Source: Macrostomum lignano (Eukaryota). From it: DNA of 42,067 nt. Where the stretch lies: assembly GCA_002269645.1 (NCBI GenBank), contig NIVC01002680.1, positions 1 through 42,067 of the forward strand. Direction: 5' to 3'. The position numbers and the translations under genes were made by a program. The notes under the pieces were generated by a model that made no database searches, was not told where the DNA came from, and worked only from the letters and a program-made list of their open reading frames with translations. Positions 8,986-9,396 of the stretch are shown here, in pieces; position 1 is the stretch's first letter, and every line of letters begins with the position of its first letter.

Positions 8986-9396
8986 ATGGCTCGCACCAAG
9001 CAAACAGCTAGGAAGTCCATGGGCGCCAAAGCGCCTCGTAAACGTCTGGCCACCAAGGCCGCTCGGAAAACCCCATTGGTAACTGGCGGAGTGAAGAAGC
9101 CGCACCGCTACCGCCCCGGCACTGTCGCCCTGCGTGAGATCCGTCGCTACCAGAAGAGCACGGAGCTGCTCATCCGCAAACTGCCATTCCAGCGGCTGGT
9201 TCGCGAGATCGCCCAGGACTTCAAGACCGACCTGCGCTTTCAATCGGCTGCCGTCGGCGCCCTGCAGGAGGCCAGCGAGGCCTACCTGGTTGGCCTGTTT
9301 GAGGACACGAACCTGTGCGCAATTCACGCCAAGCGGGTCACCATCATGCCTAAAGACATGCAGTTGGCTAGGCGCATCAGAGGCGAAAGGGCTTAG
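8986..9396 (+). CDS. Divergent histone H3 variant (H3.3-derived), intronless, 136 codons
   Basis: [35 protein letters not shown]...[11 protein letters not shown]...[15 protein letters not shown] is an intact ORF. The true start is the ATG at 8986; the 8947 start in the ORF track is an alternative codon. Confidence 0.95.

Follow-up and report, generated by a model that had tools for sequence, protein, structure and literature searches.

The window analysed here is a 42,067-nucleotide stretch comprising contig NIVC01002680.1 (positions 1 to 42,067) of the Mlig_3_7 assembly of Macrostomum lignano (NIVC00000000; PMC5730564), and it carries two histone H3 genes in close proximity. The first, on the plus strand at 8986–9396, begins with ATG and runs without interruption through 136 codons to a TAG stop, forming a complete, intronless coding sequence for a 136-residue protein. 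Its product matches the Pfam Histone family (PF00125; E = 2.1e-46, residues 7–132), which identifies it as a histone H3, and its nearest solved structures are H3.3 chains (262 bits), with several mammalian minor H3 variants also among them. The second gene, on the minus strand at 10837–11247, is likewise intronless and encodes H3.3 proper, with S31, A87, V89 and G90; it served both as the reference for the ancestral state and as the candidate conversion partner. The two genes are convergent, lying tail to tail at a distance of 1.44 kb as an inverted pair that was recovered in the repeat analysis as an inverted repeat (I1) with 314-nt arms, 95% complementary and separated by 1,442 nt. Their flanks are unrelated except for approximately 25 nt immediately upstream of the ATG. 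Because both genes lie on one contig, the gene at 8986–9396 (hereafter the variant) is not an allele of H3.3.

Codon-by-codon comparison of the two genes revealed differences at 46 of 411 nucleotides, with no indels and no internal stops. Only eight residues are replaced (T11M, G13A, Q19R, S28T, A29P, P30L, S31V and I124M), and a further 29 codons, the stop codon included, differ synonymously only. The replaced tail codons lie at 9019–9021 (M11), 9025–9027 (A13), 9043–9045 (R19) and 9070–9081 (T28-P29-L30-V31), and the I124M codon at 9358–9360. All replacements other than I124M are thus confined to the tail, the fold being otherwise that of H3.3, and K4, K9, S10, K14, K18, K23, K27, K36, A87, V89 and G90 are unchanged. 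The original prediction had described an intact H3 gene with precisely these eight substitutions, including the T11 and S28–S31 exchanges in the tail, and had stated that K4, K9, S10, K27, K36 and the A87/G90 residues are retained; the comparison bears out each of these points, the list of substitutions being exact.

The variant carries the chaperone-specificity patch of H3.3 (A87, I/V89 and G90, rather than S87/V89/M90) in the form A87, V89, G90. Animal H3.3 is further defined by Ser31, in place of which the variant has Val31 (codon GTA at 9079–9081), so that it is H3.3-derived and not H3.3 proper. No histone 3′ stem-loop (Rfam RF00032) was detected in the window at the gathering score, nor between 8500 and 11800 at E <= 10, and no other Rfam RNA family was found in the window. 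An AATAAA polyadenylation signal, a consensus match only, lies at 9624–9629 on the plus strand, 228 nt past the variant stop; with the absent stem-loop, this is the arrangement of an H3.3-type gene. Derivation from H3.3, as originally proposed, is upheld by the retained A87/G90 patch, the lack of a 3′ stem-loop and the adjoining H3.3 gene. The variant is an intact, unannotated H3.3-derived paralogue with an altered K27-proximal tail, and its sequence makes it a plausible lineage-specific histone variant of M. lignano.

The convergent genes are separated by an AT-rich spacer of 1440 nt (9397–10836), which holds the 3′ untranslated and intergenic sequence. The repeat analysis of the locus gave the inverted repeats I1 and I2 and, within the spacer, the 56-nt direct repeat D1 in three copies (9639–9694, 9949–10004 and 10136–10191), with 61–80% identity to the first. 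Upstream of the variant, promoter-like CCAAT-type motifs lie approximately 125–150 nt before the ATG on the plus strand (8837–8862), namely an inverted CCAAT (ATTGG) at 8837–8841 and a CCAAT at 8858–8862, both being consensus matches only. The H3.3 gene is preceded by TATAAA at 11396–11401 on the minus strand; the variant lacks TATAAA at the aligned position, and no TATA box is evident there. An ORF at 7711–8271 and the sequence that follows (7950–8600) resemble, by eye, a degraded retroelement gag fragment (PFDVNCEPHTLASRWEDWSSQF...), for which no Pfam match was obtained. This gag-like transposable-element fragment, 400–1000 bp upstream of the variant, weighs against reading the gene as a maintained variant.

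Two possible origins were considered and set aside. A processed pseudogene or retrocopy was rejected, as there is no A-run in 9397–9700, no flanking direct repeats are present and the ORF is intact; the absence of introns is uninformative in this respect, since the parent H3.3 gene is itself intronless. For the T-P-L-V block, no template was found in the window, where its 18-mer is unique, and a compensated frameshift around a shared CCCCA, possible by eye, is unsupported.

Divergence between the two genes is strongly mosaic. In the tail-coding block (codons 1–33; 8986–9084, plus strand), which contains seven of the eight replacements, 17 of 33 third positions differ from H3.3, with dS = 1.42 and dN = 0.174. 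The histone-fold core (codons 34–111; 9085–9318, plus strand) is near-identical to that of H3.3, and over codons 34–113 dS falls to 0.124 and dN to 0, all seven differences being synonymous. Divergence rises again in the C-terminal block (codons 112–136 and the stop; 9319–9396, plus strand), with dS = 0.955 and dN = 0.019 over codons 114–136. Third positions differ at 5 of 78 core codons versus 26 of 58 codons in the two ends (Fisher p = 1.7e-7), a contrast reached by none of 2000 permutations.

The simplest reading of this sequence pattern is that the pair is an old inverted local duplicate in which gene conversion between the arms has homogenised the core, as the third positions and the I1 arm indicate, and has left the ends distinct. 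Silent sites are near saturation at both ends, which argues that the variant is not a recent copy, yet only eight replacements are seen. Both genes have a GC3 of 0.85–0.86 in the core and less in the ends; conversion was possibly GC-biased. In the unconverted ends, GC3 of the variant is below that of H3.3 (0.58 versus 0.70 and 0.68 versus 0.80), a sign that the variant may be under weaker codon selection or less strongly expressed. The pair offers a clean example of gene conversion in which functionally distinct ends have been left unconverted.

Across the 58 unconverted codons we counted 23 synonymous-only differences, eight non-synonymous differences, no indels and no stops, and pairwise omega against H3.3 is 0.12 at the N-terminal end and 0.02 at the C-terminal end. 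The C-terminal block combines nine silent changes with a single, conservative replacement. In the tail, none of the ten Lys and Arg residues among positions 1–32 is replaced, despite changes in several of their codons. We evaluated this pattern by a neutral simulation started from the H3.3 sequence, scoring outcomes with at most eight replacements and no stop. If 11 synonymous-only changes (about half) are assigned to the variant branch, the probability is 0.002; with six it rises to 0.11 and with four to 0.31. The argument for constraint therefore depends on how the silent changes are split between the branches, losing force (P = 0.11–0.31) if few fell on the variant.

These data qualify two earlier statements. 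The many synonymous changes that had been noted are present, in 29 codons of an intact frame, but they are unevenly spread and concentrated in codons 1–33 and 112–136. The proposal of an old, maintained variant gains support from the ends, where silent divergence is long-standing and replacements are few, and not from the core, whose integrity is explicable by conversion alone and says little about selection, because conversion from a functional neighbour would repair it. The divergence pattern fits long-term constraint on a distinct protein, and would also be compatible with an H3.3A/B-like pair of which this member was relaxed only recently.

The exact protein of the neighbouring H3.3 was also looked up elsewhere. 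Intronless 411-nt genes for it are present at 10 loci in other chromosome-scale genomes, which, judging from their accessions, we take to be mostly those of schistosomes and a tapeworm. This identity indicates that all eight changes are derived on the variant. None of the ten loci has a second H3 gene within 6 kb, each consisting of a single intronless H3.3, and the pair arrangement is therefore not conserved in those genomes. The look-up of the exact H3.3 protein, which could have revealed homeologous M. lignano loci, gave matches solely on large chromosomes from other genomes.

Searches with the full variant and with a 56-residue tail query among 5.8 billion cluster representatives yielded no closer relative than ordinary H3 or H3.3, the best matches reaching 94% over the full length and 88% in the tail; this database is clustered at 90% identity, so that variant-like proteins would sit hidden inside H3.3 clusters. 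Neither a 15-billion-sequence collection nor the gene-position index contains the exact 136-residue product, and no exact record exists there for a 125-residue form starting at the internal Met. This absence is weak evidence, as gene calls on the contig are sparse (the 416-residue and retroelement ORFs described below are uncalled). JGI metagenomes scanned with a degenerate DNA pattern for a 14-residue stretch of the variant gave no matches.

We found no description of a Macrostomum H3 variant in the literature, and the supplements of Wudarski 2017 and Grudniewska 2018 contain no H3 entries. An eLife 2016 supplement lists one H3F3A-like, neoblast-enriched M. lignano transcript, RNA1509_8448. 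When its BLAST E-values were re-created, those for human and fly agreed with the variant and that for UniRef50 with H3.3.

Lineage-specific H3.3 derivatives are already well known, and the variant adds one more. Its closest counterpart is the neighbouring canonical animal H3.3 (H3F3A/B type), with which it has 128 of 136 residues in common, including A87, V89 and G90, as well as the intronless structure, the lack of a 3′ stem-loop and a near-identical core nucleotide sequence. It differs in having lost S31, which defines the H3.3 tail, along with T11 and S28-A29-P30, and in carrying Met124.

Among specialised variants, the Arabidopsis male-gamete, H3.3-derived histone MGH3 (HTR10, H3.10) resembles it in keeping K27 and placing a divergent block immediately downstream. 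In MGH3, approximately five residues just after K27 diverge, and neither PRC2 nor ATXR5/6 can methylate K27 (PMC9409234); the protein contributes to the resetting of H3K27me3 in sperm (PMC9409234; PMC7920552). The flatworm variant, with T-P-L-V in place of S-A-P-S after a retained K27, has the sequence arrangement of such K27-refractory H3.3 variants, which form a functional class and not a clade. The two are of independent origin and use different replacement residues. MGH3 is a better analogue of the variant than primate H3.Y.

The likeness to H3.Y had been proposed on the basis of Met124, a residue that the two proteins do have in common. The link to stability is on record in the literature, Met124 of H3.Y being reported to enhance nucleosome stability (PMC8855299). 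However, of the residues specific to H3.Y (K42, L46, K53, Q59, R115 and R122; PMC5291245) the variant has none, keeping R42, K115 and K122, and Met124 is its only match to the H3.Y set. Moreover, ordinary H3 or H3.3 proteins of Saccoglossus, Sycon and Caenorhabditis brenneri carry Met124 as well; among the 240 H3 sequences retrieved, the residue-124 motif was matched 128 times, and 5 of these matches have Met124. This residue is therefore not a specific signature of H3.Y, and the label 'H3.Y-like' in the original prediction overstates a weak link and is best abandoned.

A further parallel is found in the acoel Hofstenia miamia, also a regenerating worm with several H3.3-like genes. A subset of its stem cells shows enrichment of some of these H3.3 paralogues, and regeneration requires one of them (PMC10163032), which establishes that specialised H3.3 paralogues exist in regenerating worms. 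Its lineage is unrelated, however, and its variants alter a histone-fold motif (AAIL or IALE instead of AAIG) rather than the K27-adjacent tail. The mammalian variants H3t/H3.4 and H3.5 and the mouse variants H3mm7 and H3mm18 are similarly few-residue derivatives of H3.1 or H3.3, themselves with tissue-restricted expression, and position 124 also varies in H3mm18. Most of their distinguishing residues fall within the fold and act on nucleosome stability, in contrast to those of the flatworm variant, which, I124M excepted, lie in the tail.

Several consequences would follow if the variant is a functional histone. Its mRNA would probably be polyadenylated when expressed. Given the unchanged fold and chaperone patch, entry into chromatin is expected through the H3.3 pathway, and the protein would presumably be deposited by HIRA/UBN1 and DAXX into structurally H3.3-like nucleosomes. 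Met124, located in the four-helix bundle, would act as a mild stabiliser at most, I124M being conservative. The tail changes directly adjoin retained modifiable residues: S10 is followed by M11, A13 by K14, K18 by R19, and K27 by T-P-L-V.

By analogy with Arabidopsis MGH3/H3.10, K27 in the context ARK-TPLV instead of ARK-SAPS would likely be a poor PRC2 substrate. Ser28, a site for Aurora/MSK-type kinases, would be exchanged for a Thr-Pro site, and T28-P29 would, by kinase specificities, suit proline-directed kinases in place of those of the Aurora/MSK type. The variant tail would lack T11 and S31 as phospho-acceptors, and G13A and Q19R would change the neighbourhoods of K14 and K18. S31 of H3.3 is read by ZMYND11, and residue 31 also gates a K27 writer (PMC9409234). 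The net effect suggested by these analogies is that variant-marked chromatin may be less readily methylated at K27 and less responsive to the phospho-switches at residues 28 and 31. Nothing in the sequence or the searches speaks for the germline role suggested in the original prediction; in light of the Hofstenia paralogues, a role in stem cells is as conceivable as one in the germline.

Weighing the evidence as a whole, the best reading is that the gene encodes a maintained, replication-independent H3.3-derived variant with an altered context around K27, S28 and S31, and we consider this somewhat more probable than its negation. Its main competitor, a lesser but serious possibility, is that the gene is a silent or recently inactivated duplicate: the pair would long have persisted like H3.3A and H3.3B, encoding the same protein, which would account for the saturated silent divergence, before one member drifted under relaxed selection while its core was repaired by conversion from the neighbour. 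Conversion of the core counts as demonstrated, the accumulation of eight replacements without a stop is not improbable (P = 0.11–0.31) if few silent changes fell on the variant branch, and the low GC3 of the variant ends, the adjacent transposable-element-like remnant, the lack of a TATA box like that of H3.3, the absence of the exact product from all protein collections searched and the ten H3.3 loci elsewhere without an adjacent second H3 gene all accord with such a history. It is harder to reconcile with 58 unconverted codons free of indels and stops, with a C-terminal block whose nine silent changes accompany one conservative replacement, and with seven tail changes that spare all ten Lys and Arg residues of positions 1–32 (hand-calculated chance approximately 0.05). 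The purely synonymous nature of the seven differences in codons 34–113 also speaks against it, as does the conversion tract itself, which on both sides ends just before the variant-specific residues, as expected if their erasure were selected against.

It is unlikely that the gene is merely an expressed but redundant H3.3 copy, with neutral or slightly deleterious substitutions tolerated beside the normal H3.3 and no specialised role. Such a copy would find precedent in the many duplicated genes of the M. lignano genome, which has undergone a recent duplication, and would be compatible with the occurrence of Met124 and G13A in ordinary H3 proteins elsewhere and with all key lysines and the chaperone patch being unchanged. 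However, the H3.3 protein shows no variation between M. lignano and the 10 loci elsewhere, which implies that T11, S31 and positions 28–31 as a whole are normally under very strong constraint and that a four-residue exchange beside K27 is unlikely to be neutral; a block of this kind in MGH3 has been shown to have an effect (PMC9409234). It is extremely improbable that the gene stems from an error of sequencing or assembly, or that it is an H3.3 allele or homeologue collapsed into this place: long-read assembly and the many duplicated regions of this species make such errors conceivable in general, with no specific sign of one at this locus, and against it stand the arrangement of the two genes, which share a contig, run in opposite directions and have unrelated flanking sequence, the intact reading frame, and differences that are codon-clustered substitutions rather than the indels typical of long-read error. 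Beyond the reading of a maintained variant, a bolder model is quite doubtful and is offered as conjecture: K27 would be made refractory to PRC2 by the T-P-L-V block, the S28 and S31 switches would be lost, the H3.3 pathway would deposit the protein in stem or germ cells, where it would shield or reset loci against Polycomb silencing, and selection would guard the tail from the conversion that homogenises the remainder of the gene. If true, the variant would represent an animal counterpart, arisen by convergence, of the plant sperm histone H3.10.

H3.3 derivatives with an intact core and changed surroundings of K27 are natural experiments on how tail context influences Polycomb methylation and phospho-switches, the clearest such case so far being plant H3.10. 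Transgenesis and RNAi are established in M. lignano, a flatworm that regenerates (PMC5730564), and a stem-cell or germline role would be directly testable in this animal if the variant is expressed. If it is silent, the gene is an ordinary duplicate and nothing more.

Elsewhere on the contig, a 30-nt tandem repeat of 33 copies (92% match) occupies 1–994, reaching the contig start and reading as WGDSRGDVSQ-type decapeptide repeats on the minus strand. It is followed at 1080–2703 by exons of a CNOT9/Rcd1 homologue (Pfam Rcd1, E = 4e-78 and 3e-19), the 3′ part of which enters a CT-rich tandem array of 18–19-nt units at 2637–3523. A (CTGT)n microsatellite of approximately 115 copies at 4980–5436 generates long spurious ORFs in several frames. 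Between 21000 and 23000, GC skew reaches +0.43 to +0.70 and AT skew up to +0.42, coinciding with low-complexity ORFs on the minus strand. A called multi-exon gene at 24736–28130 on the plus strand encodes a 340-residue product, with a weak CUE/UBA-like match in its last exon, and contains a 23-nt tandem array of 34 copies at 26771–27581. Two intronless paralogous ORFs on the minus strand, at 31728–32903 (391 residues) and 40175–41425 (416 residues), are 90% identical; in both the N-terminus is hydrophobic, and neither matches a Pfam family. The 391-residue ORF alone is called in the public record. Between them, at approximately 34500–38500 on the minus strand, lies a degraded retrotransposon with an RNase H match (E = 1e-7) and a weak reverse-transcriptase match, in which reading frames are broken and GC content is raised to 0.50–0.59.
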